The position numbers and the translations under genes are program-made. 64,000 bases of DNA from Carpediemonas membranifera BICM (taxonomy: Eukaryota > Protista > Fornicata): contig JAHDYR010000025.1 in the NCBI GenBank assembly GCA_019828565.1, forward strand, positions 620,001-684,000, in the 5' to 3' direction. A model generated the notes under the pieces. That model was not told the DNA's origin. It was given only the letters and a program-made list of their open reading frames with translations, and did no database searches. Shown piece by piece: positions 1 through 58,831 of this stretch; the first letter of the stretch is position 1; every line of letters starts with the position of its first letter.

Positions 1-1089
1 GCCGAAAACATTGCCCCCGCCAATCATCTGGCGGTCACCCATTCCGAGCACAGCAACGAACTCACCCGCCAGGGCAAGTGTCGGGACGAAGTCAGTCGGC
101 AGGGGCACGGTGTGGAAGGCTGTTCTCTCGGCAAGGGCGACGTCTGGGCCGACGATGTTCTGCAGCACCCAACCTGCGGCAACCACGCCGGCCTTCGTAA
201 TTACAATACACCCCCCTCCAACCGCTGCTTCGATGACAAGCTCATCCTTGTGCCAGTGCGGAAGAGCAGCTTCGAACTCGGCCACGACCGGGCACTGGGC
301 GAACCTGACGCGGACCGGGACTGTCATGGCAGAAAACATGCTGAAGTCTGGGTCAGCCTCGTCGAACTGGAGGCTGAATTCCGTCGCCCGGTCGAGTCCG
401 AAGACGCCACGGGGAGTTGAGACCAGCACAGTGGGTGACCCAAGGCCGAATGCCCGGCAAACGGGAGGAACGCGGACCCTGATGTAGCGGGTGATGTCGC
501 TGAGGGGCATCGCCTCGAATAGCCTGCCCGAAACAACGCAGTGCCCGATGTTGGTTTGGCGGTCGAACACAACCTCCCCATCCTCCGCCGCCCGTAAACA
601 GCTGGCGTAGGTCTTCTTGCACATGAACCACCATAGCTTGTCGCGCTGCCGGTAGTCTAGCTGAAGGTCCCATAGCTCCTCGTCGGTCCTATTGAGATCC
701 GGGTCCGACCCAGCCTCGAGGAAGAGGGCGAAGAGGACAGTATGGGGCAGGTTGGCCAAGCCGCTGCCATGTGGTGCTAGCTCAGTGCCATTTGCAAGAG
801 CTCGGGCACGTTGTATGAACGCCAGCGCTTGTAGGCCGAGCCTATTTGAAATATTGGTCAGCATTGTTGCCAGATCGGTGATAGTTTTCCCGCTAATTGA
901 TGCATATTCGCGCTTGCGTACAGGACTCGAGGGCATGTTTGTTCCGAAGGAGCTGAAGTAAGCCCGACGGATGAGGGTGGGGATGCCATTGCTATCATTC
1001 GGGATATCGGGCACAACTGACAGCGAAAGCGCGTACGCAGACATGATTGCCCTCTGAATATCTTCTTCTTGGACCATTTCACGGGTCAT
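1..1089 (-). CDS. Family member F1 (F-box-like/RCC1-like family); 3' end runs off the window; absent from the ORF track
   Basis: Manual translation from ATG at 1089 is open to base 1: MTREMVQEEDIQRAIMSAYALSL...IPTLIRRAYFSSF...LANLPHTVLFALFLEAGSDPDL...LWWFMCKK...GRLF...RVRVP...TPRG...FAQCPVVAEFEAALPHWHK...VPLPTDFVP...LGMGDRQMIGGGN. The motif series matches F2-F6. Confidence 0.9.
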   Translation of the reverse strand, partial: MTREMVQEEDIQRAIMSAYALSLSVVPDIPNDSNGIPTLIRRAYFSSFGTNMPSSPVRKREYASISGKTITDLATMLTNISNRLGLQALAFIQRARALANGTELAPHGSGLANLPHTVLFALFLEAGSDPDLNRTDEELWDLQLDYRQRDKLWWFMCKKTYASCLRAAEDGEVVFDRQTNIGHCVVSGRLFEAMPLSDITRYIRVRVPPVCRAFGLGSPTVLVSTPRGVFGLDRATEFSLQFDEADPDFSMFSAMTVPVRVRFAQCPVVAEFEAALPHWHKDELVIEAAVGGGCIVITKAGVVAAGWVLQNIVGPDVALAERTAFHTVPLPTDFVPTLALAGEFVAVLGMGDRQMIGGGNVFG

Positions 1090-1395
1090 CAATTTGTGTA
1101 CAATTCTGGAGCGCAAGACAACAGCCAAAACTGCACATCAGTCCATTCTACCTCGACCACATAAGTCTCAAATGCTTCATCAATGACACCACTGGGCACC
1201 ACAACGCTGGGATATAAGGACGTGAAGCGAGACCCAGCTCGCGTGGGTGCCATAAAGCAACGGACAGGTCGAATGATGCATATTTTCACAGCATTACTCT
1301 GGCTGCAACCCTGGTTCGCATGAACGCCATGGTAGAGGAGATGTGCCGGTTTGAGTTTTGATTAGCTCCATTTCTTCAGACTAACATAACGTGCC

Positions 1396-1968
1396 ATGGC
1401 GAACGAAGCCACGGATTCTCGTCAGCGGCGGAGAAAGTCTGCTTGTTCACACAGTACAACAAACAAGCAACTGAGTCACCAAAAAGGATCATCTTCGCGG
1501 GAGGGACCGCATAGAGCACATAGTGCCCATAGATCAAGAACAGAAGCAAGCGAGCCCCCGCGTTCCCCGATCAATGCGCCTTTAACCCTTCAAGTACCAC
1601 ACGGTTCTTCTCCAAAGCGTGTCAGACGGCATTCATCGCCATCGAGGGACCACGCACACCGCATTCCATCCGCCGAACACTTCGAAGACCCACAAGGGAA
1701 CATCTCCCCCGCTTCCAAGCACCATAGAGCAAGAAAGCTCTTCTCGGAGCAAGTATTTGTGTACTCGACCGCCTACCGAGCGAAGTTCGTCACCAAACGA
1801 CCGGCGTGGGAGCTGCTGCCGTCTTGGGACGACTCTTTCGCCATCGGGTCCCCGAGATGCTCGAATAGGAGCCTGGAAGAGCCCGGGGGTGAGGCGGTTC
1901 GTGGCCAGGAGAGCGCCTGCCCTGATCTTGAAGCCCTTCCATTGGACACCCTCAACCGGCCTTTCTAG
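1396..1968 (+). CDS. Hypothetical 190-aa protein
   Basis: ATG in GCCATGG context, fills a gap in a compact genome, and has AATAAA ~23 nt after the stop. No recognisable domain; S/H/R-rich. Confidence 0.35.
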   Translation: MANEATDSRQRRRKSACSHSTTNKQLSHQKGSSSREGPHRAHSAHRSRTEASEPPRSPINAPLTLQVPHGSSPKRVRRHSSPSRDHAHRIPSAEHFEDPQGNISPASKHHRARKLFSEQVFVYSTAYRAKFVTKRPAWELLPSWDDSFAIGSPRCSNRSLEEPGGEAVRGQESACPDLEALPLDTLNRPF

Positions 1969-2114
1969 CGGAGTTACTTAGTGTGCTGCTAATAAATTCC
2001 ATCACCAACAGTGTATGTAACACAGGGTGCCATCTCCTCACCCGGCACCAGTCGGGCCGGGCCGCCCCATTGTCATCTGCTTGTTTACACTACCTAGTCC
2101 CTAGCCCGCCGCTC

Positions 2115-3832: not shown

Positions 3833-5503
3833 TCATTCGATCGGATCGATGTCGACCCGAAAGAAAGTCTTCACTCGCCACTCGGTCGGGTCAATATCGG
3901 CCGGTTTCACCACGCACTCCTCAGCCATCAAGTACGTTCTGACCACTCTCCATATTCCATCCACGCCCAAAAAGCAGAGTCTTCGATCAACGACCCCCAT
4001 CGCCGCCGCCTCAAAGGGCAGCGTGTAGTTGAACGCAACGTTGAATGTGCAGCAGTGCGTCTTACCACCGCCAACCCAAACGAGGTCGGTGTTATCGCAG
4101 TAGAACTGAGTTACCCTCTCAGGGAACCGGAGCGGGGTGGGTGTAGACCGGATCGTGTCCTCGCGGAAGGGAAGAACGCCTGACTTCACAGCAATGCTGG
4201 GGACCTTGCCAGAGAATAGCAGCTGGGTGCCGCTCATAACTATGTTGAAATAGAACTCGTTGGCGACGGCTATGCTCACCGGCAGTGGAGCCTTGACGAA
4301 GCCGCGCATCCAGTCATGATGACCCAACCCGAGCTGGCCGGAGTCATTTCGCCCCGAGAGCATCTGTTGCCGCCCCATGGTCAACAACACGAGGTACTCC
4401 TCACATATTACATGGTCAGGGAAAAACCCAGCGGGCAGGTCGACCTCATTGAAAGTATACGGGTTGGCCACCGCGCCAGTAAACCAGCTGTGGTTGTACC
4501 CAGCTACTATCAACCCTACTCTCGTGAGTACCAGTGTGTGTGTCGCCCTGATGTGGACGGATCGAACAAGCTCATGCTTGCCCCAGGCAGGCAGCCGAGC
4601 CTCTTCTGAACTCACCTTTGTACAGGCAGGGAATGTGATCCGGATCGGGTTGGCCACGTCACCACCCTCGAGGCCGAGCCTACTCCGGTAGTTGTCACCC
4701 AACCCGAACTGCCCGTGTGGGGTCTCTAGAATGTACGACCCGCGGTATCTATGGACATGTAACACACGAGGGACGACGAGTCGGGTAAACTTGACGGGCT
4801 CGACCGAGCAGAATCCACGGTTGACCGCGAAACGGTCCACAAAGTGTGCATGGTGGTGTGTGATGTCAGTTGTTGCTTTGAACATTATGCCAGCATACAA
4901 ATAGTGGGCCACGACTGTCTGGTTTCCACCCGAGAAGTGGAAGCTTTCGCCATCATGCGTCGCAACATGAAGACTAAAGAAGAACTTCTTACACAGAAAC
5001 CAGAGGCACTTATCAGCTGTCTGATAAGCATACTTGACTCGCTGGAGGGCCGGGTCGTCGCCGAGGTCTGGGTCAGCCCCCCCTTGCACCAGAGTTGCCC
5101 AGACGGTGCTCTGGAGAAGTGTGTGCAGCCGATCAGGCAGATGTTGCCCTTCATTGAGCTCGACGTTCATGCTCAGCTCCGGACCGTATGCGAGGATGGC
5201 GATGGCGCGGTTGATGATGGCTTGGGAGGCCGTGGGCAATGGGGGCAGAGACCGGAGCATGTCAAGGAGAGTATCAACGGAATTTGGTGAGGAGTTGTGC
5301 TCTAAAGGCCAGTTTTGCGCGTTTGAGTTGTGTTTGGGCTTCCATCCGAGCGTATTGCAGGCCTTAAGCAATAAGGAAGGCACATCCCCGGCAATATCAT
5401 CTGTCGCAGCAGCAGAAAGCTCATAGGCTGATAGTAGAACTTTCTGTGCTTTGTAGTCATGAAACCTGGCGAGAATAGCGCTGAAGGTGTTTCTCAATGC
5501 CAT
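3833..5503 (-). CDS. Family member F2
   Basis: GDVPSLL, GPELSMNVEL, LHTLLQSTVWATL, GADPDL, LWFLCKKFFF, and RCC1-like GLGDNYRSRLGL and SGRNDSGQLGLGH. The track start is TTG; first in-frame ATG at 5503. Confidence 0.9.
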   Translation of the reverse strand: MALRNTFSAILARFHDYKAQKVLLSAYELSAAATDDIAGDVPSLLLKACNTLGWKPKHNSNAQNWPLEHNSSPNSVDTLLDMLRSLPPLPTASQAIINRAIAILAYGPELSMNVELNEGQHLPDRLHTLLQSTVWATLVQGGADPDLGDDPALQRVKYAYQTADKCLWFLCKKFFFSLHVATHDGESFHFSGGNQTVVAHYLYAGIMFKATTDITHHHAHFVDRFAVNRGFCSVEPVKFTRLVVPRVLHVHRYRGSYILETPHGQFGLGDNYRSRLGLEGGDVANPIRITFPACTKVSSEEARLPAWGKHELVRSVHIRATHTLVLTRVGLIVAGYNHSWFTGAVANPYTFNEVDLPAGFFPDHVICEEYLVLLTMGRQQMLSGRNDSGQLGLGHHDWMRGFVKAPLPVSIAVANEFYFNIVMSGTQLLFSGKVPSIAVKSGVLPFREDTIRSTPTPLRFPERVTQFYCDNTDLVWVGGGKTHCCTFNVAFNYTLPFEAAAMGVVDRRLCFLGVDGIWRVVRTYLMAEECVVKPADIDPTEWRVKTFFRVDIDPIE

Positions 5504-5887: not shown

Positions 5888-8800
5888 CTATTCATCCTTG
5901 TTCAGCCCCGGGGGCTTGATCCCAGGCAGATTCATCGGACTGAGCATGAGCTTGGCCCCGGGCCGCGGCATGCCGTTCATCGGGGGCAGCACCGGCAGGC
6001 CCGACTTACCCAAGGACGGAGGCGGTTTGGGAAGCCCACCCGGAGTGGATAGCGCAGGTAGGCCGAGCTTGTGGCCAGCTCCGCTGAGAGCAATCGGCGT
6101 GCCACTCATAGGAGGCTTGATGGAGGGCAAGACGGGCTTGGCGCCAGCGGGGACATGGAGGCCGGGGCCCATGGGCTTGGCTAACGGCGTGGCGCCAGGC
6201 AGCATCGGGAGCGGCGGGAGGGGCGACGTCGGCTTGAGCTTCATCGGGGCTGGAGTCACAATCGATGTCGGCTCATGCTCTTCGTCATCGCCGGTTTGCC
6301 GCTTCTGAAGGATGAAAACAGAGATGGCCTCGCCCGTGAGGAAGAGGCCGAGGCTTCCGACAATGCAGACGCCGGCCATGCAGCAGAGAAGGATGAGCAG
6401 CACAGCCCCAATGCCCGGAATGATCGCATAAAGTGCATCTACCGTGTTGATGATCTCAGAATCTGACACAATCTCCTCGTCGTCAAACATCGCCGAGACA
6501 GACCTGGTTTCCGAGTATATGTACGCGGTTGTGAGGTCGGCTGCGGCGTCATCGGCGTCGTCGAACGTGCAGATGCTGCCGTCAACGAGTCTCACAGGAT
6601 GGGCTGTGCCATCCACGACGATGCTGAACGAGCCAACGCTGCTGATGGCCGCGCCCTCGATCGACGCGCAATATGTGCCGTTATCAAGCCGCGTGACAGT
6701 CGGAGAGAAGTGGTATCTTATCATGGCCGCGTTCACCGTCGTGGTGGCCAGACAGGTGGACGGCCCACTGGTGTCGACGCCAGTTAAGGGGCGCGTGCCC
6801 ATGCCGCTGAAGTCGAGGTTGCTGGGACAGACTGCCGACTCCATGGCCGCAGTCATCGTCGTGCCGGAAAGAGTCAGAGTCGTGTCCGGAGTCTCGAAAT
6901 CTGCCGGAATAGTTAGAGTCGTCGACTCAGTGGTTGAGTCATCGAACTGGATCTCGAGCGTGTAGTTGCCAGGTGCGATGACGCCATCAGGGCTTGGGAG
7001 GACGGGGACGAGCGTGATGGGGTTGGTGCCGAGCACCGTGGCTGCGATTCCATCAATTGTCACGCCAGATATGTCTGTCCGGCTTGTGACAGTCACAGTG
7101 GACTCTGAGTCGTCGACTTCGGCGAGGCAGGTGGTGTGGGCAGCCCCGTCGGCGTCGTTGGTGGTGCCAAAGGCGCATGTGGAGCAGCTCGAGGCTCCAG
7201 TACCGATGGTGTAGTGCCCGCCGTCGCAGGGGGTTGGTGTAGCCTGGCCGCCAGCCGAAGATGTACCCAGAGGCGCTGGGAGACACTGACGCTGGCCTGC
7301 AATTGCCGTATAGGTTCCAGCAGCGCAGTCAGCGCAGGTGTGCCAGCTGGTGGCGTATTGGCCGGCGGGGCAAACCATGGAGACGACGTGGACAGTGCCG
7401 ACCCCGTCAAGGGACGACCCTGCTGCCAGGTTGAGAGGTGTGATGGCGAGAGCGGCGCCGAACCCGTCCACGGGGGCATAGCCGGTGTCGGTGAGGTAGA
7501 CATCGGCATAGAGGGAATACGAGCCGTTGTCGTTGAGCTCGAAGAGATGGACCCCGCCCATGACATCAGTGGCCCCGACCAGGGTCCCCGAGACTGCGAT
7601 GGCCTGGCCAAACTGTTGGCCCTGGACGGGGCCGATGTCGAGGGTGTGGAACTGCGTGGTGTAGACCCTGACGGTGCCTGCGTCGGTGACTTGGTTGAAG
7701 TCGCCCGTGGGTCGCTCCGAGTTGGCGGTGGCAACCACGCCGGTTAATATGTCCGTGGCTGCAGCGCTGAATCCGCTGAACTCGGGGGCAATAGTGCAGG
7801 TGGCGTCCGACAGATCGGGGGTGTAAGCGCACCGCAAGGCGATGGCGCCCAAGCTGATAAAAACGTTGACTGGGTCGTGGGTACTGCCGATGAAGAGCGA
7901 GCTGGCCGATAACGAGAACACCGTCTGGTCGATGTGCGCATGCTCGACCCATGTGTCTGCTGAGAGCTCGAACAGGACAACCGTGCCAGTGTTGGTGAAC
8001 TCAGTGGAGCCAGGCGCGAGGACGGCGAGCAGGGTGCCCTCGAGGGCGATGGCGGCGCCGAACTCGAAGCCAGGGCCGCTATTGGCGCCCTCGAGGACCG
8101 AGTGCTCAGTGAAAACACCTGCGGTTCGACTAAACATGTACACGCGACCAACCTCGGAGCAGCCCGACACCGCACACGTGTCTGGCGCCCCCACGGCAAG
8201 CCAGTCGTCCCGAATCACCATCGTTGCGGCGAACTGGTTGTTCGGGACGGCTACCAGGGGAGAAATGCTGCCCGCCGGAGTCCATACAGCGCTGTCGTCG
8301 CTGTACACAAAGATCGCCCCGTCACTGGGCGATCCGACGAGGAGTTCGGGCCCGTCGAGGGCCACAGAGGCGCCGAAGAGCTCAGAACCCGTGATGGTCT
8401 GGATCTCATATGATCTGGAGCAGTAGGTGGCACCGGAGCCGGCTTGGGCGGTTGCAAGGGGGCATTCGATGGCAGCAGTGTGAGGATAGCCGTCCGCTGG
8501 TACAAAGGAGCCAGCCGGGGCAGATTCGCATGCCGTGGCGCTCTTGTTCGGCTGGTACGTGCCAGAATCACAGGGGAGACAGACCGTGGCTTCAAGGGCG
8601 TAGGAACCGTTCGGGCATGTGTGGTAGCTGTTGGAGTAAGCGATAGCGCCGCTGGGGATGGCGCCGCAGGCCGACCAGGCGGTGACCACCTCATCTGAGT
8701 CGCAGTTGTATGGGGCGAAGATGACAGCATCGCTCCCACCCAAAACCACGAGCCCGAAGTCGGTCATGAGGAGGTCGACCCCCATCTTCTCGTCAGCAAC

Positions 8801-11800
8801 GGAGTCAGGGATGGTGAGAATGCCAGCGGCGGCCCAGAACCCCGGCCCGAGGCGGTGGACCATGGTCACGAGGCTGGTATAGAAGTCACTGATGAAAAGA
8901 ACATCCTTTGCCATGGCGAGGGTGCTCCTGCTGCTCCCCGCGGCCGCGTGGATGACGAAGAGGTCCCCAGTCGCGAGGACGAGCTCGCTGTAGACGGTGC
9001 TGGTGCTGCTGTCATCTTGGTATGCGATGACGACGCTTGCTTCGTCAGTGGAGACGGCTACGTCGCGGACCGTGCCGGTGAAGTCGGCGGGCGACAGCAG
9101 GCTATATTGGCCGGCCGTCTCGAGCGAGAGGCGGTACACAAATACAGCGTCGTTCGATGCAATGGCGATGGTGTCCCCGACCGCGTCGATGACACGCCCA
9201 AACTTGGCCGAGGGCGTCGGCGTGGGCTGGAACAGTGCTTGGTGGAGCTCCCATGTCCCGTCGACAAGGGCATAGAGGTAGACGCCGCCCGCCAAGGATA
9301 GGGACCCTGCATACGCCAGGTTGCGGTCGGGCACAGCGATGAGGTCATTCCTGAGACGCGCCATGCTCCGCGCGAACTGGTCAGAGGCGTCGTGCCCGTC
9401 GTCTGGTGGGGTGACCAGCTGGGTTGGCTCGAGAGTCACCCTGTCGTACGCGATGAATGCGCCTATGAAGCCCCGGAGAGTGCGGACGACCACCTGCTGG
9501 TCTGTGACGACGATCGCCTGGCCGAAGCGGTAGTCTACGCCGTCAGTGAGCGTACCGATCATACCCCAATCGGTGGAGTACTCGAACAGACGCACGGCAC
9601 TGCCTGACGCGTCGGCCATGTACCTGAACGCGGCGAGACCCTCATTGACATCGCCCGCGAGCGCGTGGTTTGGGTTCTGGGGGTGGTTGTACCCGTCCAC
9701 ATCGACCCGTTCGCCGCTGTAGTCCTCTATACACGCAGTCTGGGCGTCATTAGGTGAGGTGCCCTCGGGACAGGCGTGGCACACGAGAGAGTTCTCCTGG
9801 GAGACGGTCCCTGCCTCACACGCGGCGCACGTGTGTACTGTGTCGGGGTATTGCCCAGCAGGACACTTGTAGAACGTCAGCATGACAGAATCAGTGCCAG
9901 GGGAGCCGATCACACAAGCCCCACCTGACGCGGCGGTGGCGTCGTACGAGTAGGGATATGACTTGAACGCGTCGATCCAGACACCGTCCTGACGGATAAA
10001 CCAGCTGGTAATGGCCGCAAAAGGCTCTCCCACACCGATCACATCGTCGGAGAGGAAGTACACAGAGTTCCCAAAGCCAGCCGCCTGGGCTACCGCGTCG
10101 AGGCCCTCTTCCACGAGGACCTGGAGGAGGGGGAAGGCGGCGGCCTCGTCGTTGCTGTACATGAACACGCCGCCGACTGACAGGGAGTTGCCGACGCCGC
10201 TATCCGAGGGGGCGCCGACCAGTATGAACTCGTGGTTGATAACAATCGACGTAACCTCAGTGCTGGGCTTGAGGATGGGCTCGACGAAGGTAAACGGGGC
10301 GCTCCAGAAGTCCGGGTAGATGCGGACGGCGCCGACCTGACTTGTCATGACAATCATGTCGCCGTAAACTGCGAAATTATGACCATATGCGTCGATGGCG
10401 ACCTCGGCGTAGTTGTCGGGCGAGGTCGTGAGATCAAGCGTGTACAGCTGCCTGTCGGTGTCGGAAGAGGCAATTGCTGTGGCGTAGAGCGTGGTGCCGC
10501 TGAGGTCGACTTGCCAGCCAAAGTACGTTTCGGAGCCTGGCGGGGCGATGAACTCCGGATCTTGGAAGATATGGCCCGATCGTTGGATCACACAGACTCT
10601 GCCGGTGTTGCCAGAGTAGTTGGGGTCGCCGACGACAATGTATTCCTCCCCAATGGCGATACGCGTGGCGCGACCGTTGAGGGTGAGCACGTCGGGGAAC
10701 GTCGCGGCTGGCTCCCACAACAGCGAATAGGGGTTGAACCGAGCGAGTGCGAGGGATCTGCCGATCATGTCAGACGCCGCGAACAGGTTGGCATCAGTGC
10801 TGACGGCGACGGCGTTACCAAGCGTTGCCGACGACGAGAGACCGAGCTCAGCACCCGTCCGCACCTGTACGTCCAGCCCGAACGGGCTACATGTCCCGTC
10901 CGGCCAATACACGAGCCCAGCCCGGCACGGGGCGCAGTACAGGTCGTGGGAGACCTGGTCAGCGGGGCAGCTGGCGCACTCGTACCATGACGCGGTGTAC
11001 TGGCCCGCCCCGCAGTACTGGGAGGCAACGGACACGCGACTAGATAGTGACGCGGTGCCGAGTGCTGGGGCGCCGCATACTAGGAGCTTCTCGGTGGCCG
11101 CGACGGAGTGCCCACACTCCGAAGAGGCCACGCCGTTGATGGTGACGCCACTAAAGGACCAGGCGAGGCCATCGTGGAAGAGGGGGGCCATGACCGACGC
11201 GGCGGGAACGCCCACGACTACAGTGCTGTTGCCTGCGGCGGCAATGGACGCGACATCGCCGGCCGGACATGATACAACCTGACTAAGGTGCCATGCCGGA
11301 TCAGATGCGGAGCTCGTCCTGAGGAAGACCTCGATCTCGTCAGAGGACGGTTGGGTGGCGAAGAGCGTGCCATCGTCCAGCAGCGCGAGAGATTCGCTGT
11401 CGGAGGCGGCTATATTGATGTAGCAGTCGGTCTCAGTGGAGAAGTCGCAGTCGCCTGGGTACGAGTAGACGCGGATGGTGCCACTCTGCCCGACAGCAAA
11501 GAATTCGTCGTTCACAGCGATCGATCCGGTGTGAGTAAACGCGGTCTTCGTCCAGGAGCCTGCCGCGTAGGAGAAGACGGCGCCGAATGAAGCCGGGTCG
11601 CCATATGTGGCGACGATACGGTCGCCGCTGACCTCCACAACACTGAATGACTCGGTCGGCTCCAGGTTTGTCTCGAGCAGATATGACCGGAGCCTGTTCG
11701 TGTAAACATAGATCCCAGCCCCATCCAGTGCAAGCACGAGCCAGCGGTCGTCCATGGCCACGTCCCTCACTGGGTTGCTGCCGGCGAACCAGAACTGCTT

Positions 11801-14800
11801 GATCTCGACCCAGGACCCCTGCCAGCGGGCAAACAGGGATGCGGCGCTTCCATCCTCGCTTCCCGTGAGGACGAGGTTGTCATGCACGGCAACGGACGTA
11901 CCGAAGTGGACCGAGCCTGCCACACTGCCTGCTGGTACGTGGTACGTGGGAGCGATCGCCAGTGATGTGCAGCCGGCCTTGTCTGACGTGGGCTCGAAGC
12001 CTGGGGCGCACACCGAACAACGCCGGGCACCGTCCTCGCTGTAGGTCCCGTCGGGGCACTCTGCGCATGTGACCATACTGTCAGCGTAGGTTCCGGCAAC
12101 GCAGTCGGCGGTGAAGCCTGTGACCTTGCCGTCTGTGGTGTCGAGAAAGCCCGCAACGGCGAAGTTGTGGGAGACAACACCGCTCATCCCGGCACCATCG
12201 GTAGTGAGCGTAGCGATGTTCGTCTGGCCGTAGCGACGAGTTACAGGGTTAAACTGCATCATGGTCAAGCCGCTGACTGTAGCGTCCGTGTAACCAGTCA
12301 TCAGCAGGCCCGCCGAGGCCGAGAGTGTCGTCCCGAAGTGCACCGAGGGATCCTCGCCGTAATTACGGACCCACGTGAGCTGGGTCCACTCGCTGGTGTC
12401 TGTGTCGAGTTCAAAGGCGACCACGGCGCCCTGTGCGGTGCCAAACATGTCGGCGTCGGGGTCAGAGAACAGGAGGAGGTCGTAGACGTCGTCGTAGGCC
12501 ATGGATGACCCGAAGCTGACAGTCGCCGTGGGCAAGGTGGCTGTGATGACCTGGATGACGGCGCTCCAGTCGGACTCGTGGACGGCATAGACAGTGTTGG
12601 CGCTGGGGGCGCCGATGAAGAGCGTGCCGTCGTGCTCGAGCAGGCTGGACCCGAGGGCGTCCGCGCCCCGGCCAGGCTTGTCGGCCAGCGTAATAAATGT
12701 CACGCCAGTGAACGAGCCAAGAGCATGATGCCGGATCTGAACCTTTCCAGCACCGGCAACGGCAGAACCCCCGATTGTTACATCCGCTGCCGGCTGACCA
12801 ACGGCGAGGTAGTCGCCCCACGCGGCAATGGCCTGGCCGAATGATGAATCGCCGCCGAATACCGTCGTGAACGCCTCGACCGACGGCCCGAGCCTGCGGT
12901 AGACAAAGACCGCGCCATCAGCACCGACGTACAGCCAGCTGTCTGCCAGTGCGAGGGACCGCCCGAACATGTCGTCGGTCTGGCCTGACCCGAGCTTGGC
13001 ATACTCGGAGAGCGTGGAAGCCGAGTCCGCAAAGAGGTTGAGGACGGCGACACCGTTCGCGTAGGCGGAGTTGTCGACAAACTGAGTGGCGATCACGATG
13101 GTGTCTGCCTCTACCGCAACGACAGAGCCGTACCGCCCGTCGGGGCTCGCAGTGAACGGCGAGGAGTAATCTACGCGGGACACCAGCTGCTTACAGCCCG
13201 TGTCGTCGCTGAGGGGCAGGTTCGGGGCACACGCGTTGCAGCCGGTGCGCCAGCTGGCCATGTGGTCGGACAGCTCGGTGCAGGGCTGGTATACCACCGA
13301 GACACCTCCCATAGTGCTGTCGAGGGCGGGGGCACCGAGAGCAATGAACTGCGGCGTGAGGGCGACCGATGATCCGAGGCGGTCGTCGTCTGAGGCGGGC
13401 TGGGCGATGATCTGGTCGAACTCCCAGTCGCCAGTGCCGGTGAGGACGAAGAGATGGGCCCGGCCGGCGATGTGGGCGCCGTCGTAGTACTCAGGGGCAC
13501 CGGCGATGATGGTATCGTCAGCAATGGCAACAGAAAAGCCGAACGCCTCTGCTGCGGGGACGTGGGCCTCGAGAGTGGTCGAGATCGCCCAGACGTCGCC
13601 GTCCAGGGCCAGGACAGTGACAGTGCCGGCCCCGGGGATGCCGTTAACAGTGGCAGCGGGGGTTCCGACGACGATGGTCGTCTCTGTCGCGGCAAGGGAT
13701 GTGCCAAAGCTGGTACCGCCCTCGATGAGCTGGGTCTCGGTGACGTCGCCCGTGAGGCCGCTGTTGTATGCGAGGATGGCGACGATGCTGTTCGTAGCGG
13801 GATCAGAGGCCGCAATGAAGGACGAGTCTGGCGCCACAGCCACTGCGGAGCCGAATGCGTCACCGTGGGTTGACATGGTCGTCCTGAACTTAAACTGCTC
13901 GGCCCAGAAGGACCCGGTAAAGGAGTACACGACTACCACGCCGCTGTCAGAGTCGGGGGCGCCTACAGCAAGCACGGATTCTGAGAGAGCGACCGCGGTG
14001 CCGAAAGATGTTGCCGTTTCGCCCAACACCAGTGTGTCCACAAGGTCGAAGGAGTGGTCCGAGCGGGAGTAGACGTATACGGTGCCGAGCGCTGGGGACC
14101 CGAGGGCAAGCCAATGCTCGGTCACATCAAATGATGCGGGGAACATGGACGGGGCAAGCGTACCCGGGTCGGCGGCATGGAACAAGTCGACCGCCCACAC
14201 ACTGCCGGAGAACGATATCTGGTACACCGCGGGCAGGGTGTCGGCCTCCGAGCTGAGGGCGAATATGTGGGTGCCGAATGCCTTGACAGTGGAGCCAAAC
14301 TTGTCTGCAGCGGCTCCCCCGACGACTGTGGCGATGGAGTAGTCGGGGATGCAGGCCGTCTGGCCATCGTTGGCAGTGGAGCCGACCGGACACGCGGTAC
14401 ACGCCTCCCAGCCGGCCTCGGAGTAGAACCCGGCAGAGCATGTCTCGCACGAGTGCCAGGAGACCGGCTGCTGTCCGGCCTGGCAGGAGATGGACGCGAC
14501 AAACACGGCATCGGCCATACCGGTCGCAACCTCGGGTGCAGAGGAGAAAGCCATGAGCGATCGTCCCACACCGACCTGCTGGCCGATGTACATGCCGCCA
14601 ACAGGGCTGGGGGTGGTGACGGAGGAGGACTCGACCCACCATCCGTCCTCGATGCGGAAGGAGACGACGACACCGGTGTTCGGGAGGGTTGTCGTGGTGG
14701 AGGGCGACCCGGCGACGACAGCGGTGCTGTCCATCGCGAGGGAGGCGGGGATATTGTAGCCGTCGATAGCACCCTCCTGATAGACGGTGTTCTCGAGGTG

Positions 14801-17800
14801 GAACTCGCCATTCTCGAGGAGGAAGACCTGGACCGCACCGGTCACCTGGCCATCGACCGTGGCCCCAGGACAACCCACTGACAGACGGACCGCGGATGCA
14901 GTCTCAACAGCAGCAAGAGTGTCGCCGAAGCGTGTTTCCGTGCTGACGACGGTGGCTACAAGCGCCAGATCCATGGTGTAGACGTAGACCATGCGGATGC
15001 TCGGGGCGCTGATGAAGATGTAGGTCTCGGTGACGGCCATGGCGGCGCCGTACTCGTCAGTGTCGCCCCCTTCAAACAGCAGCGTCGGCTCGTCGGCCCA
15101 CGTGGTTCCGTCGTGAGAGAAGGCGTAGACTCCACCGGATGTGGTGGCTGCAGCGGCGAGGAGGAGGGTGTCTGTGATTGCAACCTGGGTACCCAGGTGG
15201 TCTGCGGTGTCAAAAGTCAGCGTTCTATGGGACTCGAACGCATACCCTTCTCTGCGATACACTACCGCAGCCCCCTGCCCTGCATAGTCGTCGGGCGAGC
15301 CGACAACGAGCCAGGAATCGCTGAGGGCGACGGACAAGCCGAAGCCGGTGACATCAGATGTCTCGAGGAGCAGTTCCTCGAAGTATGAGGCCGTCAGAAG
15401 CCCCTTGCGGCGGTACATGGCGACTGTGGCGCCATTCGACCCGATTGCGATGATGTCATCGAGCACGGCCAGCGCTGAGCCAAAGCCAGCTATGTCTCCA
15501 GCGCTGGGTGTGATCTGGAACACCAGGTACTGGCTGACGCAGGCGCTGGCGTCGTCATTCGGCCAGTATCCCGTGGGACAGGTGTAGCAGGCAAGGCTAT
15601 GCGCGGGTGCGTATGTCCCGAACGGGCAGTGCAGGCACGAGAACCAGCTGTCAGAGTAGTACCCGGCCGGGCACTCCGCGTTCCACTCCGCGTGCCATGT
15701 GTCTATCCCGGCGGTATAGTGTGATGCGGCGATGATGGTCAGGTCAGACACGGCGATCAGCCCGCCCAGCGGTATCACGGCGTCGGGGTCGGTGTAAACT
15801 GCGGTCTGCTGCCAGTGATCATCTGTATCCTTGTCGAACATGAGAACACAGCCAGTGGAAGAGCCGACGACACACGATGTCCAGCCCACGGCAACGTGGC
15901 CGTCGTGGATGGCGATGCTGGACGGGAAGGCGCCGTTCTCGACAGGGTCGTTGGGGGTTACCGTCGCCCTGAGCACCCAGTCGGAACCGTCGAAGCCGTA
16001 TTCGTAAATGACGCCGCTCCCCTCATCGGGGGCACCGACCAGCATGGTGATGCCCTCAACGGCCACCGTGTTCCCGAAGGCGTTGTTCCCGAAGACTGTC
16101 CCGAAGAACTGCCAGCCCGACGTGTAGCGGAGGATGTCGACGGACTCCTCGTCGACCAGGCCAATGATCGCCCAATCGCCGCTGATGTCAATACACTCAG
16201 AGGTGTGAGTGGTCGCGCCCGTGTAGGCCTCCTCCCAAACTTCGCTGTGGGTGTAGACGGCGTATGCCGTACCAGAGCCGGAGACAGATGCTACCAGGAG
16301 GTTATCGCCGTCCACAGCGACGAGCACGGTGTGGAGTCCCGTGGCGACAACCTCTGGGCCATCCCACCTGATGCCGCTACGACTGTAGACGACCGCGTCA
16401 GCTGAACCGGAGGCAGAGAGCCCACCGACGGCGATCCAGTCATCAGAGAGAGCTAGGCTGTACCCAAAGCCCTTGGTTGCCCCAACATCGCCTGGTACCT
16501 CCGTGAAGCTTGCACTAACCCACGATCCTTCACCGTGTATAAAGAAATAGATGGCTCCGTCGCCGCTGTGCGAATGCGGTGTGCCCAGCACCGCGAGCAG
16601 GCCGTCAGTGGCAACACTACGGAGAGACATGCCGTCTGCTCCAATGAGTTGGTTCCTATTGGAGATATACGTCTTGTTCATGCAGGAGAGGCCGTCGCCC
16701 ACAGTGTATGGGGGACAATCGGCGCAGGAGTACCATGTGTCTGCGTGTTGGCCCGCCGCACATCCCGGGTAGATGCAGGAGAGGGCGGTCGACTGGGCAT
16801 CCGTGGTGAAAATGACGCCGTCATTCACAACAACAGGAGCCCGGCCAAAGCCGAGGCCCTCAGCAATCGAGTCGGCGTTGGGGAGGATATACCCGACGTC
16901 GGCCATGTCGTAGCTCGAAGACACGGGTACCCGACCCGAAAAAGTCATGGCGCCCGTCTCCCGGCCATAGAGGTGGTAAGCATCGGCCGACGTGACCATG
17001 TTATCGCCAAAGGAGCCGAGCGCGGAGACGTAGCCGTCGTCTGCGGTGAAGTCGGTGGTGACGAGCCGGGGGGAGTCGGGACTGTTGTCGTTGAGTCTGA
17101 TCTGGTAGGCGCTGGCACCCTCTGAAACGTAGACCAGCGTACTCGAGGCAATTGTGACGTCTGAGCCAAACCCGACACCGCCTACGCTCGTTCCCGCTGG
17201 AGCAGACCACGTGGGAACGTTGTAGTAGTATATGGTGTTGGTGCCGAGCTCGCTGACCGCGGCAGTCACGCTCCCGTCAAACTCTCGGGCGGTTACGAGG
17301 CCACCGAAGAACCCTCCCGAGACGGGCGACGGCGCCTCAATGCTTGGCGTCGCTTCAGCCGCCCATGCGGTCGAGTGGTGGTAAATGAACACCATGCCCG
17401 AGCTCGGACCGTTAGCGGAGGATCCTGGTGCGCCGACGAGGAGATAGCTGCCTGCCACCTGGATGGTCGACCCGAACTCTGCATAGGACTCCGAGCCCGA
17501 GAACGCTGTGTTGTACGTCATCGCTGCGTTGATCCGGGAAAAGATGAATACGGCGCCCATATTATCGTCAGTGTAGGCCGACACGGCCAACCAATCGTCA
17601 CTCAGAGTGAGGGCCCTGCCCAGGCAGAAGGAGGGGGGGATGAGGCCGGCATCGAGCGTGACTGTGTCGGCGAGGGTCCAGGTTGCGCCAGAAAAGGCGT
17701 AAATGTCGACACGGCCCGTGTTGTCGGTCTGGCAGGTAGGTAGAGAAGCGTACTGCGGCGACACAGCGAGAACAGCGCCACTAGATGCGAGGGCCATGAC

Positions 17801-22625: not shown

Positions 22626-22820
22626 ATGATGGCAAGAACGGCCCTTTGCCTGCTACTGCTACTTGCAATGGTTATGGCCTTCCGTACGGCCCAGATAACA
22701 ACGATCCCTTCAATAGCACAGTGTATGTGCAGTTTATGGCACATTCAGCTTGGCGATGGAGCATCGCATCCTAGAGATCTCGAACCTGCCTTCAGACGCG
22801 ACGACAGAAGATATTTTTAA
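22626..22820 (+). pseudogene. 5' remnant of a signal-peptide gene cut at the duplication junction (22721)
   Basis: MMARTALCLLLLLAMVMAF is a clear signal-peptide pattern. After 32 codons the frame enters duplicated, presumably non-coding DNA and stops at 22820. Confidence 0.5.
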
Positions 22821-35141: not shown

Positions 35142-35270
35142 GCGGTGTGTATATAGATGTTTTTTAAACCGTGTCAGGTCCTTTATGTAATTATGTAATT
35201 CCCTTTTGGGAGTGATCGCAGACGCTTGTTACAGCTGTGGTTTCAGTGAAGAGGCAGCACCGGTATGCCT

Positions 35271-36377: not shown

Positions 36378-37779
36378 TCCACGCCTAAGCATGAACATCG
36401 TGCTCGCAGAGGGCGAGGAGCTCCCGGTCGCCCTGCACACGCTTCTCCAGGGCACGATCTGGGCGACCCTGCTGCATGGAGGGGTCGACCCGGACCTGGG
36501 GATGACGAACGAGAAGGCTACTGAGCACCACATGCGCCGCAGGGACAGCGATAAGTTCCCCTGGTTTCTCTGCCGGAAGTTCTTCTTCGTCCACGAGGTC
36601 GCCAGCCGCGATTGCCAGAGCCATTGGGCAACGATCCAGTGCCCCGCCTGGCGAATGCTGTATGCGGGTAGACTCTTTGAACGCAGTCACCCCAACCCCA
36701 TCGTACCGGACCTAGCTCCCCAGGACACCGGGTTTTCCTGGATCCGGGCCCCGCCGATCGTCTCCATCTTCAACATGGACTGTGACTCCTTTCTACTGCT
36801 TGCCACACCACATGGTATCTATAGTTATGAGAAAAGCACCTTATTCTTTTCGGTCAGCGGCCGCTTCCCGCGAGACCACGAACTGCCCGCGCGGGTCGAC
36901 TTCGCCAACTGTCCTAGTGTGTCGGGGCTCGAGCGACAGCTGCCACTGTGGCACAAGCACCAAGTGCTTGTCGACATGGCCGCGGACGCGTTTGGATGCG
37001 TCGTCCTGACACCTGCCGGCGTGGCTGCCGCGGGAGGTGTGCAGGACTTTATGCTTGGCGACACTGACAATGAGGTTGGTGAGAATGTGGCCGATGCCTA
37101 CTTCCTGCCAGTTCCCCTGCCCGCACGCTTTGTCCCAACACGCCTGATAGCAGATATTGATTTGGATGTGTTCATTTTGTCCATGGGCGATCGGCAGATG
37201 ATTGCCGGGTCCAATTGGCGCTCCCGTCTTGGCATCGCTGATGAGCATGGCACCTTCGTCAACCTTCCGTTCCATGTCGACCAGATAGTCTTCGTCGAGG
37301 AGACCTTCTGCATTTTTCGTGACGGCAAAACGCTCCTGTTCGCCGGCGCAATTCATGATATTTTTGTGAATCCAAGCATGATTTCATTCGAGACGGTTGA
37401 AACCACCCACCCCCACCCGACGCAGTTCAAGACCCCAGTTAGCCGACTCTTCATGGATCGCAGGGACTTGCTGGCCGCAGCTGTTGTTGCTGAGGGCAAG
37501 ACCCACTGCGCCTTGATGTGCCTCCCCCCAGGCATCACTGACGTCGAACCTGGCCCCCACTCGGCCGCACTGTCCGTCTGCCACCGGGTGCTTTCATTTG
37601 AAGTGACCAGCGTGGCCCTGCTCGGGACCCACAGTTCCAGGCTACTCCTGCAGAGACCGGTCGAGGGGAAGGACACCTGGGTGACGGTGGACCTCATGAC
37701 CAGCGAAGACCCGACTCCCGTGGATAGAACCACCCTGGATCGGACACCTTTCATCCTCGACGAGCTTCCTTTGGTGTAA
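36061..37779 (+). CDS. Family member F5
   Basis: MSNEGKK..., GDIPSLMACAY, GPRLSMNIVL, LHTLLQGTIWATL, DPDL, WFLCRKFFF, LPLWHK and LSMGDRQMIAGSNWRSRLG. Start chosen by alignment with paralogues; the longer track start overlaps the neighbouring gene. Confidence 0.9.
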   Translation: MSNEGKKTREALITAHRLSITATSSIAGDIPSLMACAYQRHFNEEIPLRSGVLSALRTFIHNHTTTDALQDGHDLESLIATLSEIPPLEPSAQALLDRARSILTSGPRLSMNIVLAEGEELPVALHTLLQGTIWATLLHGGVDPDLGMTNEKATEHHMRRRDSDKFPWFLCRKFFFVHEVASRDCQSHWATIQCPAWRMLYAGRLFERSHPNPIVPDLAPQDTGFSWIRAPPIVSIFNMDCDSFLLLATPHGIYSYEKSTLFFSVSGRFPRDHELPARVDFANCPSVSGLERQLPLWHKHQVLVDMAADAFGCVVLTPAGVAAAGGVQDFMLGDTDNEVGENVADAYFLPVPLPARFVPTRLIADIDLDVFILSMGDRQMIAGSNWRSRLGIADEHGTFVNLPFHVDQIVFVEETFCIFRDGKTLLFAGAIHDIFVNPSMISFETVETTHPHPTQFKTPVSRLFMDRRDLLAAAVVAEGKTHCALMCLPPGITDVEPGPHSAALSVCHRVLSFEVTSVALLGTHSSRLLLQRPVEGKDTWVTVDLMTSEDPTPVDRTTLDRTPFILDELPLV

Positions 37780-46556: not shown

Positions 46557-46620
46557 CTGTGGTACAAATAAATAAAGCAACCCTCATCCTGGCGGTGCTT
46601 TACTGGCGTTTACTAGTGGC

Positions 46621-51607: not shown

Positions 51608-51861
51608 GGCCACTGGGGCTGGTGCGTACCAGGCTGTTCGCTAAAAGTCACGTTTTCTGTCATATGTGCTTTGTGCCACAAGTCGCAGCCGGATTGGACC
51701 CAAGCAACTGCTCTAGTTTTATGGTACCATGCGCCCAACTCGTACGTGCCACACGCACTGGCTATGCTTGTCCAGAGTCATGCTAAATTCACTTCACATC
51801 ATCACGCGGGCTAAGGACACTGTCGAAGAAAGACGTTTTCTCATCTTCCTTGGAGGAGTGG

Positions 51862-54174
51862 ATGTCAGGAACACCTAAGAATGTGGCCACGCCGCATAGC
51901 ATATATCCTCCAAACATGTTTGTTGGCAGCGACTCGCTCCTGCTCACGAATCAGTTCGTCGAATTATTAGAGAACGATGGGCCTCCGGGAACACTTCTAG
52001 GACTGAACAACATATCAGAGCCATCGAGAAACTTCCAAATCCAAGTTTTGAACGGCATCCGCGCTGGTTATCACTTTCCCGTTTCGTCACGGCCCATCAT
52101 CATGGGCCGCGGTTTGGACTCCGATGTGACAATTCCTGATCTCACACTCTCCAGGCACCATGCTAAGGTGTTTGTGAAGGACGGCAATGTGTATATCGCC
52201 GATGTCGGCTCGTCGAACGGCACTTTCATCGGGTCCACACGGCTTGTGCGGAATAAGCCGGCCAGAGTGCCCTTAGCCACTGTCATAACCGTCGGAAGTG
52301 TCCACATCATCGCTCAGTACACCTTGGACAACCCGCAAGGCACTCTCCGCGTCCGTCGAGACTCCGCGGACTCTGCCTCGTCCACTGGGTCGATCAAGCC
52401 CACGCCGCGCCTCAGTGCCCGTGGGGAGCGCCGTCTCTCGCTCACAGACGAGCAGCGGATCCGTGCGGACATAGTCACGGCCGGCCGACGTCTGAACGCT
52501 GTACTGCGGGTCTCTGAGATCCTCGGGCTGCGGTCATTCTCGGAGGACCTCGCAGAGGAGGTTATAATTGACGTTCTCGACGTGCTGCTCAACCTGTTCA
52601 CCAACGCCAAGCAGGTGATGCTCCTACGAGGCCGTTCCGAACGTTCCCTCCGCTTCATCAGCGCCCGCCGCCGCGCAGAGGACCCCGACTCCCTCCTGGA
52701 CGTCGACGGTGAGGACACTGCCCAGTTCGAGTCGACCTCCGAGTTCCACATCCCCCGAGCCCTCCTCACGAGCGCCTTCCAGCGTGCCCGGGTGCTGGCC
52801 CTCCCGCCCCGGTCCCGGAACGACGATCTGGGCCATCGCGCCCTCGGCCATGACCCGGACAGCCTCCCCGCACTCCTATGTATCCCGCTACTGGTCCGTG
52901 CGCCGTCTGGGAGGAACACGAACTCCCTCCACAACACGCTGTACGGCCCCGCTGGGCTGACGACACCCAGGGGCAAGGGGGGGCATGACTTCCTCGGGAT
53001 GGTGTTCGTTGAGGGCATTTCCTCCTTCCAGTTCACGAAGAAGGACATGGAGATCGCCACGGCGGTCGGCCACCAGCTCTCGGTCGCCCTCAAGTCGCAG
53101 CAGCTGGTGTGGGAGGCCACCACGAACGCCAACATCCGCCGCTCCCTGACGAAGTACCTGCCGCAGCCCCTGGTCGACCAGGTGATGAAGGGCAAGAAGG
53201 ACCTCGTGCCCCAGGGCGTCCAAGGCACCGTGCTCTTCTCAGACATCGTCGGGTTCACCGCCCTGAGCGAGAGCATGCCCCCGACCGAGCTGATTGAAGT
53301 TATGAACCGGTATTTCTCGGACGCCGTGCCGTGCATCTCCTTTGAGAACGGCACGATCGACAAGTTCATCGGGGACGCCATCATGGCGCTGTTCGGCATC
53401 TCCCACTTCATCCAGCACGGCGTGTTCGACGCCGAGTCGCCCCTCCGCGCCATCAGATCGGCACTGTCTATGCAGAACCGCGTGTTCGGCTTCCAGCACG
53501 CCTCCCTGATCCACCCCCTCCGCCTCGGCATCGGCATCCACACGGGCCCCATGGTCGCGGGCAACATCGGGGCGGCCGACCGCATGGAGTATACAGTGCT
53601 CGGCGACGTCGTCAACACGACCCAGCGCATCGAGAGTACGGCCATGGCCAGCTCGATCTTGATCAGCGAGGAGACATACCGGGTCGCCCTCGATGCCATG
53701 GCAGCGCGCCACGCCGACCCGGCCCCCCTGTTCGCCGTAACCCGGATGCCGCCGGTCAGGGTGAAGAACAAGACCCACCCCATCAGCCTCTTGTCGATCA
53801 GGGGTCTGTTTGACCGGGACAACCTCTCCATGCTACTCTCCATCCCCGGGTCCATCGACTCGATCCCGGTCCTCATCACACGCCGGGTGGGTGTCGAGAA
53901 CACGTTCGTGCTCGCCCATAGCGCGTGCTGCAGGGTGGGGCCGGGTCCGCTCCACCTATGCCTGCCTGAGATCGACCTGCCGCCCGTGGAGATCACCAGA
54001 GTTGTCCGCACCTTGGCGTGCGAGGCAGACCACACCGACTGCCCCTGCGCCCAGATGTCTACGATGGTCTCCTTGTCGGACCCCACGCTCTCAGGACTGA
54101 TCGACCGTGCTGAGCCGATGCAGTGCGTCAAACCGTGGTCCGAGATGCCGAGGAACCCCCTGGTCGACAGCTGA
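51862..54174 (+). CDS. FHA-GAF-class III adenylyl cyclase
   Basis: FHA motifs (GR, LSRHHA, DVGSSNGT), a GAF-like middle, and cyclase motifs VLFSDIVGFT, DKFIGDAIMA, YTVLGDVVNTTQRIE. Confidence 0.92.
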   Translation: MSGTPKNVATPHSIYPPNMFVGSDSLLLTNQFVELLENDGPPGTLLGLNNISEPSRNFQIQVLNGIRAGYHFPVSSRPIIMGRGLDSDVTIPDLTLSRHHAKVFVKDGNVYIADVGSSNGTFIGSTRLVRNKPARVPLATVITVGSVHIIAQYTLDNPQGTLRVRRDSADSASSTGSIKPTPRLSARGERRLSLTDEQRIRADIVTAGRRLNAVLRVSEILGLRSFSEDLAEEVIIDVLDVLLNLFTNAKQVMLLRGRSERSLRFISARRRAEDPDSLLDVDGEDTAQFESTSEFHIPRALLTSAFQRARVLALPPRSRNDDLGHRALGHDPDSLPALLCIPLLVRAPSGRNTNSLHNTLYGPAGLTTPRGKGGHDFLGMVFVEGISSFQFTKKDMEIATAVGHQLSVALKSQQLVWEATTNANIRRSLTKYLPQPLVDQVMKGKKDLVPQGVQGTVLFSDIVGFTALSESMPPTELIEVMNRYFSDAVPCISFENGTIDKFIGDAIMALFGISHFIQHGVFDAESPLRAIRSALSMQNRVFGFQHASLIHPLRLGIGIHTGPMVAGNIGAADRMEYTVLGDVVNTTQRIESTAMASSILISEETYRVALDAMAARHADPAPLFAVTRMPPVRVKNKTHPISLLSIRGLFDRDNLSMLLSIPGSIDSIPVLITRRVGVENTFVLAHSACCRVGPGPLHLCLPEIDLPPVEITRVVRTLACEADHTDCPCAQMSTMVSLSDPTLSGLIDRAEPMQCVKPWSEMPRNPLVDS

Positions 54175-56891: not shown

Positions 56892-56945
56892 CTTGGGCCG
56901 GTGTGCAGTGGACGTTGATGCGTCACCTCACTTGATGTGACCAGC

Positions 56946-57068
56946 GAGGAATGGAACGTCGACATGCCGACGTTCGGGGAGCCCATGGCGATGGATGACG
57001 GCAGCATGGACGAGCTCCTCTTCGTGCTTCGGGCCGACGAGATTGTGCCTGTCAACCACGTGGTGTGA
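56946..57068 (+). pseudogene. 3'-terminal fragment of F3 (EEWNVDMPTF...VNHVV*)
   Basis: Identical to 28346-28468; has no 5' part. Confidence 0.92.
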
Positions 57069-58336
57069 GTGACTCTTCCTGCATGCACGCGTCAGCTATA
57101 AAGCAAACTGGGTTTGATGAGTTCTTTTATGCCAACCACGCTTCAGGCGCTCCAGCGTCTGAAGGCTCATTCAGATGCCCGTCTCGGCCGGGGTCCACGG
57201 GTCGACGTCGACTGGGGTAATCTCACGCTCTTCTCGAGAAGATGGCGGCACACACGCGACCAGCTCAGCCACCCCATCTGACACTCTGCCCACTTTGAAC
57301 CACTGGTCGGTGGGGTCGCGGAACGAATGGACACACTGGCCACCTGACATTCTTCTGCCAAGTGCTGTCGCCTTAAAGGGCACAGAGCACTGCTTGTCGT
57401 AATCACACAGATGAGTGCTGCCCTCATTGACCCAGACGAGAGTCAACTGGTCACAAAAGAACCCCTTGACCCTCGCAAGGAAGCGGAGCGGGGTGGCTGT
57501 GAGGCACCTGTCGCCCTCTCTGTATCCTGGCAGCAGGCCAGACTGGACGATATGAGAGAGGACTTGCCCGGCGAACAGCAGCTGACGGCTGCTGAGGAAG
57601 ACATGGAAGGATTGAGATGGCATGATCCGGTCGACTCTGAAAGGAAGCTCCTCGAAGCCAGCCATATCATTCTCGTGCCCGAGTCCCAGCTGGCCATGAC
57701 AGTTATTGCCACTGATCACATACCGATTGCACATGGAGAGTATGACAATATCATATTCATGCACGATGTGATCTGGGATAAATCCAGCGGGCACAGCGAC
57801 TGGGTGGAAGCGGTTATCGTATTCTTGAACAAGGTCTGTATACCATCGTGTCTCGTCGCCCGCCATGACAGTGCCGACCGGGGTGACTATGAACGTCTGC
57901 CATCCCTTCATCGACACATCAGTCACCATCGTATGCTTCTCCCAAGGGGGCAGGCTGGCCTCGAGCTCGGCGACCTTGGGGCAGGCGGGGAAGGTGAGGC
58001 GGGTCGGGTCGACGAACTCAGATGACTTGAACCCCAGCTGGCCATTTCCGCTATACCCCCATCTCCACATGCCCTTGGGCGTCCTGGCGATGTGGGTGAT
58101 CACGTTGCTCTCGACCTCGAGGGCCCTGGGCATCCTGGCCCTGGTGAGGGCGGTGTGGTTGGCAGTACTGAGCATGAAGAGTCGGCCCATGTACATGCGG
58201 TGGTGGTGGCATATGTCGTGCCAATTCCACTGATAGCTCTCGCCGTCCTTCTCTGCCACATTCAGCGCGAAGAAGAACTTGCGGCAGAGGAACCAGAGGC
58301 ACTTGGCCTCGGGGGTGAGAGCCTTGCGGATCTTGT
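56946..58336. repeat. Segmental duplication B, copy 2
   Basis: Copy of 28346-29736. Confidence 0.97.
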
Positions 58337-58831
58337 CATGCATATTAGTCTTACCTGGCTGCTCCTCTCGAGCCTTCTTCAGCATCCTGCCCTCGAGGTC
58401 GGGGTTGGCCCCGCCACCCACCAGACACGCCCACACCGCGCCCTGGTTCAGCGTGTGCAGCGCGACCGGGAGCTCCTCGCCATCCGCGAGCTCGACGTTC
58501 ATGGACAGCGGGGGGCCGCTGGTGAGGATCGAGCGGGCGCGGTCGAGGAGGGCTTGCGCGGATGGCTCGAGAGGGGGATCTTGCAGAGCGTGGCGAGGAG
58601 GGATTCGAGATCGTGGCCATCTTGCGGCGCGTCTGTGGTTGTATGATTGTGGATAAACGTCCTTAATGCGGACAGCACGCCAGATCTGAGCGGAATCTCC
58701 TCGTTGAAGTGGCGCTGGTACGCGCAGGCGATGAGCGAGGGGATGTCGCCTGCGATGCTGCTCGTAGCCGTGATTGAGAGCCGATGGGCAGTGATCAGCG
58801 CCTCTCGCGTCTTCTTGCCTTCATTGCTCAT
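57171..58831 (-). CDS. Family member F6, a mosaic of F5 (5'), an unknown donor (middle) and F4 (3'); 1-bp frameshift in a G run at 58573-58577
   Basis: ATG at 58831 (MSNEGKK, as in F5). The coding strand has C5 where F5 has C6; restoring one base gives a 553-aa frame. Confidence 0.85.

Follow-up and report, generated by a model that had tools for sequence, protein, structure and literature searches.

What are the six related genes that lie in a 64,000-nucleotide stretch of the genome of Carpediemonas membranifera, and is the short helical box in front of their propeller a disguised F-box? The genome examined comprises 24.2 Mb in 69 contigs, and the window (the whole stretch of DNA analysed) corresponds to C13:620001-684000. 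An earlier interpretation based on the letters of the window alone (the sequence-only reading) had described the genes, here F1 to F6 (Table 1), as a six-member family with an ordered chain of shared motifs, an F-box-like helical module and an RCC1-like propeller. The paralogues and the motif chain are present, and pairwise BLASTP between the six loci gives E-values of 1e-21 to 1e-96 at 25-39% identity, far beyond chance. The total of six did not hold, as hundreds of copies exist genome-wide. Our overall interpretation, to which we give an even chance, is that the genes belong to a Carpediemonas-specific repertoire of about 300 intracellular adaptors descended from an F-box + RCC1 protein.

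AlphaFold models with predicted local distance difference test (pLDDT) scores of 89-91 consist of a bundle of four helices, a box of three helices and an RCC1-like beta-propeller of seven blades. In the F2 model (pLDDT 91, predicted template modelling score 0.84) the order is bundle, linker, box, propeller. The best matches in a fold search with the propeller were all RCC1-like (Foldseek E 5e-11; VIA Z 15.6, root-mean-square deviation (rmsd) 5.9, 281 aligned), PF00415 (RCC1) lies above the Pfam cut-off in F2, F4 and F6, and 62 of 80 members have an RCC1 match at E<=0.1, confirming the propeller proposed from the sequence. Seven blades are common to the family and the RCC1-like domains of RCC1, RCC2, UVR8, RPGR, HERC and WBSCR16; unlike these, the family keeps the repeat signature in one or two repeats only and has extra helices inside the propeller (template modelling scores 0.45-0.50 by target). 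Identity to RCC1, the Ran guanine nucleotide exchange factor, was 13-15%, with no sign of orthology in this comparison. For residues 2-106, searches with the N-terminal model in Foldseek, VIA and Atlas returned only generic four-helix bundles (Z <=7.3), which we do not read as homology to ferritin. No 19-residue window in the six loci exceeds a hydropathy of 1.72 and no signal-like N-terminus is evident, as had been noted before, so the proteins are probably intracellular.

The suspected expansion proved to be large. One family motif occurs 249 times exactly in the genome (control 0) and 400 times with two mismatches (control 81), and the box profile yielded 346 candidates genome-wide, of which all 150 that were scored match. 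We estimate the family at about 250-350 loci, broken copies included. A profile search of 1.84 billion representatives revealed >100 clusters with the family's domain plan; the divergent clusters that were looked up (22 of 22) came from C. membranifera, and the next matches were generic RCC1 proteins. Related loci were not found in the viral or metagenome contigs searched, and a viral origin was ranked low. Judged from these searches, the family appears to be Carpediemonas-specific, with no sampled member outside C. membranifera. Most members are annotated as hypothetical. Our literature search found nothing joining Carpediemonas with RCC1, and papers on Carpediemonas and F-boxes concern other subjects; the family is large and previously undescribed. 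Several annotated members (P0099, P0123, P0109, P0021, P0032, P0077 and P0125) have more than one propeller, or joined WD40, ankyrin, prenyltransferase, Vps37 or TPR domains, and are either true fusions or merged gene models.

Two independent AlphaFold models (F2 and F1) give the box the same pattern: a 3-residue turn, a 2-residue coil, a 10-residue helix, a loop, an 8-residue helix, a 2-residue break (a hydrophobic residue and Cys) and a further helix. We take the Skp2 F-box to follow the same sequence of turn, coil, helix and break. Insert length in the box ranges from 7 to 53 amino acids (aa), and this variation occurs only between helices 1 and 2; two members have no insert at all. Helix 1 is of fixed length in 122 of 129 sequences and the junction of helices 2 and 3 is free of indels in all 129; inserted F-boxes likewise carry their extra sequence in the first gap between helices and not in the second (PMC9485057). 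The F-box consensus is matched at positions 4, 9, 12, 13 and 27-31, and at 28 Cys, Ser and Thr interchange. At the helix 2-3 junction this consensus reads Val-Cys/Ser-Lys/Arg-x-aromatic, and the family follows it without indels. Giant-virus F-box + RCC1 proteins rank 3, 5, 8, 10 and 18 among the best structural matches, with 428-463 aligned columns in four of the five versus 306-385 for RCC1-like PDB entries; this support is weak, since the search output does not state which ranges align and some phage alignments are just as long. On balance we consider the box probably a divergent F-box by ancestry whose first two helices are separated by an insert.

The alignment of a bridge homologue, P0313, with the family runs from the box through to the C-terminal end (99.45%, E 4e-22). 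This protein, whose RCC1 repeats are canonical (110 bits), is without bundle, linker and insert. Its F-box-type helix 1 begins at residue 1; among 478 windows scored with an independent F-box matrix it comes 2nd, and it aligns in register with the F-box profile (hhalign P 0.034). Sixty genome matches to P0313 outline a second, more RCC1-like subfamily. One member of this subfamily (C32:72458-73816) lies about 10 kb from the sole near-canonical F-box found in the genome (L008, C32:83861-83986; a 1,285-aa frame, below the Pfam cut-off).

The box occurs in two types. The majority type (~88% of members, including F2-F6) has a conserved linker and neither the proline nor the glutamate of F-boxes, and the linker-less type (~12%, including F1) has Pro or Ser at position 5, a feature coupled to a hydrophobic residue at position 8 (8/12 versus 1/114). 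The F-box pattern of a Leu-Pro start and hydrophobic residues at 8, 9, 12, 13 and 16 is followed largely, though not at 16, by the linker-less type and P0313, and is not followed by the majority type. Linker-less helix 1 falls in the top 2.3% of windows with the independent F-box matrix, a partly circular result as the type was chosen on position 5, and aligns in register with the F-box profile without reaching significance (P 0.076). F1 is the sole minority-type member in the window, and the sequence-only reading had extended its F-box-like start to the whole family; the start belongs to the F1 type and is absent from the majority type, which has no proline. The coupling of linker and position 5 suggests that the linker may pack on the surface of helix 1. 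Residues of helices 2-3 are near-invariant in both types. On a propeller-only tree (FastTree; long branches) the linker-less type is scattered, with 12 changes of which at least 5 are forced by well-supported branches; repeated switching or recombination would explain this distribution. Across 129 members, how F-box-like a protein is does not correlate with how RCC1-like it is (rho -0.08).

A number of results weigh against an F-box. Pfam gave no F-box match, whether for full proteins (80), N-terminal halves (119) or excised boxes (10), and F-box hidden Markov models (PF00646, PF12937 and PF15966) detect no family copy genome-wide. Searched against the PDB, box profiles retrieve no F-box protein, while the F-box reference profile used as a control retrieves FBXO4, FBXL2 and FBXL5. 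Profile-profile and block-scan tests were null for the family as a whole, fold searches with the N-terminal model returned nothing for the box, and Atlas feature searches were blank. The ~88% of members that lack the F-box proline have Leu or Asn in its place, Gly for the glutamate, Thr or Ala at 8, Ala or Gly at 16 and Ala or Asp at 21, and score at background on the F-box matrix (median rank 133). In addition, the Cul1/2-like cullin of the organism is too divergent to assign. The direct searches are insensitive, since the genome's canonical F-box itself falls below the Pfam cut-off and matches nothing in the PDB; the power of the fold searches is limited because bundle or propeller fill the match lists. 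The F-box reference set was narrow (17-19 bacterial or viral F-box + RCC1 proteins and the genome's own F-box) and was drawn from bacterial and viral proteins because no relatives of the genome's own F-box were found. As the profile match failed and Skp1 docking is only putative, we do not class the family as F-box proteins. The earlier proposal of an F-box with an inserted loop is backed circumstantially by the pattern of helices, the placing of indels, the bridge homologue and the presence of Skp1 and cullins, but no direct similarity search bore it out.

Possible partners are encoded in the genome. Two near-identical divergent Skp1 genes (L006:1192-1668 and a second copy, L007) keep the F-box-binding C-terminal helices, with a POZ domain too divergent for Pfam. 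Five cullin loci comprise one Cul3-like, one unassigned and three copies of the divergent Cul1/2-like protein (L003-L005), one of which is truncated; its N-terminus is unalignable. Giardia, a relative of Carpediemonas, has been reported without Skp1 and Cul1 (PMC7029713). We give docking of the box on the organism's divergent Skp1 an even probability. FBXO24, a mammalian adaptor of Skp1-cullin-F-box (SCF) ligases, binds SKP1, CUL1 and RBX1, and its substrate is degraded (PMC10932545). As the likeliest mechanism, at even odds, we propose that the variable propeller would capture a target protein, that the box would attach to Skp1 and that, in the manner of FBXO24, at least the exposed, linker-less type would pass the captured protein to a cullin ligase; conversion between copies would refresh the binding faces of the propeller. 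Delivery of a propeller-bound target to a Skp1-cullin ligase for ubiquitination by the majority type is a tentative proposal, somewhat short of even, and is likelier for the linker-less type and the bridge subfamily.

Pooled pairwise ratios of nonsynonymous to synonymous substitution rates (dN/dS) among 17 related copies were highest in the bundle (0.72), lower in the propeller (0.56) and lowest in the box, with 0.30 in its first half and 0.19 in its second. The box is under stronger constraint than bundle or propeller, and selection is uneven between domains, as the sequence-only reading had supposed. We limit the claim to constraint on the box and do not extend it to positive selection, since the pairs are non-independent, synonymous divergence near the box is reduced by conversion, and few changes underlie the windows with values >1. 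The pattern resembles that of Caenorhabditis F-box families (PMC8665587) and would fit any conserved core.

The nearest neighbour of 22 related copies shifts along the gene, mostly at 90-100% identity, which indicates tract exchange between copies on the window contig. The last 195 kb of this contig hold ~30 copies and fragments, many of them frameshifted. F4 belongs to a tract-swapping, recently expanded clade. F6, previously listed as a divergent paralogue of ~550 aa, turned out to be a frameshifted mosaic. It matches F5 at 91.5% identity over the first 436 nt and F4 at 99.6% over the last 1175 nt, and has a 1-base deletion within a C run at 58573-58577. Three further copies on the contig have the same deletion, which points to inheritance by conversion or to a recurrent homopolymer error. 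The long frame of F6 (57171-58502, 443 aa) lies downstream of the frameshift and retains linker, box and propeller. The match of the 1400-base tract (Table 1) is a recent duplication or conversion. The linker's conserved Met opens bundle-less frames that start 14 residues upstream of the box, in the window at 57171-58502 and in P0020, P0035, P0037 and P0045; copies frameshifted upstream could still yield bundle-less proteins from this Met.

Table 1. Family members and related features; positions refer to the window unless a contig or locus is named
Feature	Position	Strand	Remarks
F1, linker-less (F-box-like) type	1-1089	-	truncated by window edge; box ~580-762
F2, majority type, intact, 556 aa	3833-5503	-	
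F2 four-helix bundle, N-terminal, residues 2-106	5186-5500	-	generic fold, fast-evolving
F2 conserved linker, residues 108-125	5129-5182	-	majority type only
F2 three-helix box, residues 126-184	4952-5128	-	candidate divergent F-box
F2 box elements			helix 131-140, variable insert, helix 162-169, break Leu170-Cys171, helix 172-184
F2 seven-bladed RCC1-like beta-propeller, residues 186-552	3848-4948	-	
F3, intact, 559 aa	26789-28468	+	box ~27107-27304
F4, intact, 561 aa	28571-30256	-	box ~29645-29869
F5, intact, 572 aa	36061-37779	+	box ~36424-36612
F6, frameshifted mosaic	57171-58831	-	5' part F5-like, 3' part F4-like
1400-base tract	56946-58345		99.6% identical to 28346-29745 (F3 3' end and F4 3' two-thirds)
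P0313 (KAG9393432.1)	L018:1474-2955 = C13:901474-902952		bridge homologue

Other explanations of these observations differ in how much of an F-box they leave. In the main rival, the majority type would be an F-box relic that is no longer SCF-active, in which the linker covers the helix-1 surface and the proteins serve as stand-alone or Skp1-only binders or as scaffolds. The linker goes with loss of the F-box-like start and of the coupled residues at positions 5 and 8, the two types are interspersed on the tree, and SCF-independent F-box proteins are known (PMC3814724), but helices 2-3 have remained near-invariant in both types; we consider a relic rather doubtful. If the box were instead unrelated to F-boxes, a lineage-specific helical cap whose Leu-Pro/Ser start and Cys/Ser break are ordinary helix-capping, the uniformly negative direct searches would be explained. 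However, those searches are insensitive to the point of leaving the canonical F-box of this genome below the Pfam cut-off, and the bridge protein, the indel rule and the position just before the propeller fit an F-box + RCC1 protein, which makes such a cap unlikely.

Two readings assign the helices of the box to other known modules. The Leu-Trp-Phe-Leu-Cys-Arg stretch presumably resembles a BC-box in its spacing, and a BC-box/SOCS-box binding Elongin C and a Cul2/5-type cullin would suit the slight preference of the divergent cullin C-terminus for Cul2. A BC-box is one continuous helix, however, whereas both models break the helix at Cys, and Elongin C was not found (in an insensitive search that also missed Skp1), so that we consider this reading very improbable. 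The helix ending in Gly-Ala-Asp-Pro had raised the alternative of a degenerate ankyrin repeat, and box profiles do match designed ankyrins and tankyrase. These matches cover only 9-22 helix-cap positions and gain their score by summing over repeats; the box is present in a single copy, has no ankyrin Pfam match and forms no tandem helix-turn-helix-hairpin repeats in the models, and P0162, P0189 and P0313 keep the box without the Gly-Ala-Asp-Pro motif. We therefore set the ankyrin alternative aside as extremely improbable. Equally slight is the probability that the expansion is mostly neutral or selfish, in which case duplication and gene conversion would have spread copies that do not serve as a repertoire. 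The many frameshifted or fragmentary copies near the contig end and the frequent segmental duplications in the genome would suit it, but >100 intact clusters with <50% identity keep the whole fold, the box is under purifying selection, coverage is transcript-like, and the members scanned have no mobile-element domain. A divergent F-box is the explanation that we prefer.

Regarding that coverage, F1 (complete protein 539 aa, P0127) is covered by a 1681-nt contig of sequencing run X1 and F2 by contigs in pieces over 4139-5496, and these contigs end at intergenic gaps around the two genes. This fits transcription, for a single sample and a run type presumed to be RNA.

FBXO24 has an F-box followed by an RCC1 propeller, the order proposed for the family. 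It is a single conserved gene with a recognisable F-box and is without bundle-linker, insert or repertoire; we found no sequence link between the two. The two-domain plan proposed for the family also occurs in giant viruses, in F-box + RCC1 proteins of Marseillevirus LCMAC102, Pithovirus LCPAC102/302 and Orpheovirus, and in one from a plasmid-like contig (P0192, L031). These proteins have canonical repeats and no bundle, unlike the family, to which they are 9-19% identical (rmsd ~10 A over the whole alignment). The plasmid-like contig (ENA contig k127_399972) is bacterial and encodes a MobA relaxase, ParA and a resolvase beside the F-box + RCC1 gene, which has about a dozen close relatives, probably from protist-associated bacteria. 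In Caenorhabditis and plants, expanded families combine a constrained F-box with a variable substrate domain, and foreign proteins have been proposed as their targets (PMC8665587). Those families and ours each comprise hundreds of lineage-specific copies. The expanded F-boxes of nematodes and plants pass Pfam and carry FTH, FBA, leucine-rich repeat (LRR) or kelch domains; here, by contrast, the partner domain is RCC1-like, the box cryptic and the host a metamonad. The inserted atypical F-boxes of Ctf13, Amn1, Ylr352w and Ydr306c have their inserts between helices 1 and 2, as in the family box (PMC9485057), and Ctf13 binds Skp1 outside SCF (PMC5771398). Unlike the family, all four are single-copy LRR proteins with demonstrated Skp1 binding.

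The genes flanking family members in the window are ordinary eukaryotic ones. Members had been described as scattered singly; F3 and F4 adjoin, tail to tail and 102 bases apart. A 3.39-kb block occurs twice (22721-26108 and 32030-35418; 99.8% identical) and encodes a WD40 protein of 590 aa and a 164-aa coiled-coil open reading frame. Less than 700 bases beyond each copy comes a family member (F3 and F5), and the pair is either a recent duplication or an assembly artefact. An 84-base non-coding stretch upstream of F3 and F6 (26247-26330 and 58998-59081; 94% identical) is oppositely oriented relative to the two genes and has no further match within the last 195 kb of C13. At 5888-21352 (minus strand) a single frame encodes a candidate giant surface protein of 5,154 aa, whose sequence has what looks like a signal peptide, a membrane segment at the C-terminus and a tail rich in proline. 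At 51850-54174 (plus strand) lies a protein with the unusual combination of FHA, GAF and adenylate/guanylate cyclase domains.

The family amounts to ~3-4% of the 8,300 proteins of the published assembly of C. membranifera (PMC8516963), a free-living marine flagellate. A defence role is suggested by analogy only: the idea that the adaptors target proteins from bacterial or viral invaders or from mobile elements is speculative and rather doubtful. More unlikely still is the full picture of a recombination-diversified, ubiquitin-based recognition of invaders, in which this share of the genes would be cryptic F-box adaptors with reshuffled propeller faces, served by divergent, duplicated Skp1 and cullin and switching repeatedly between linker-covered and exposed forms. 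Should the box prove to be an F-box, hundreds of F-box proteins would exist in a genome where only one, barely detectable, had been apparent; expansions of adaptors like those in nematodes and plants would reach a unicellular anaerobe, and protist F-box inventories would be missing whole families. If it is not, the family would still be a large, undescribed repertoire for intracellular binding.

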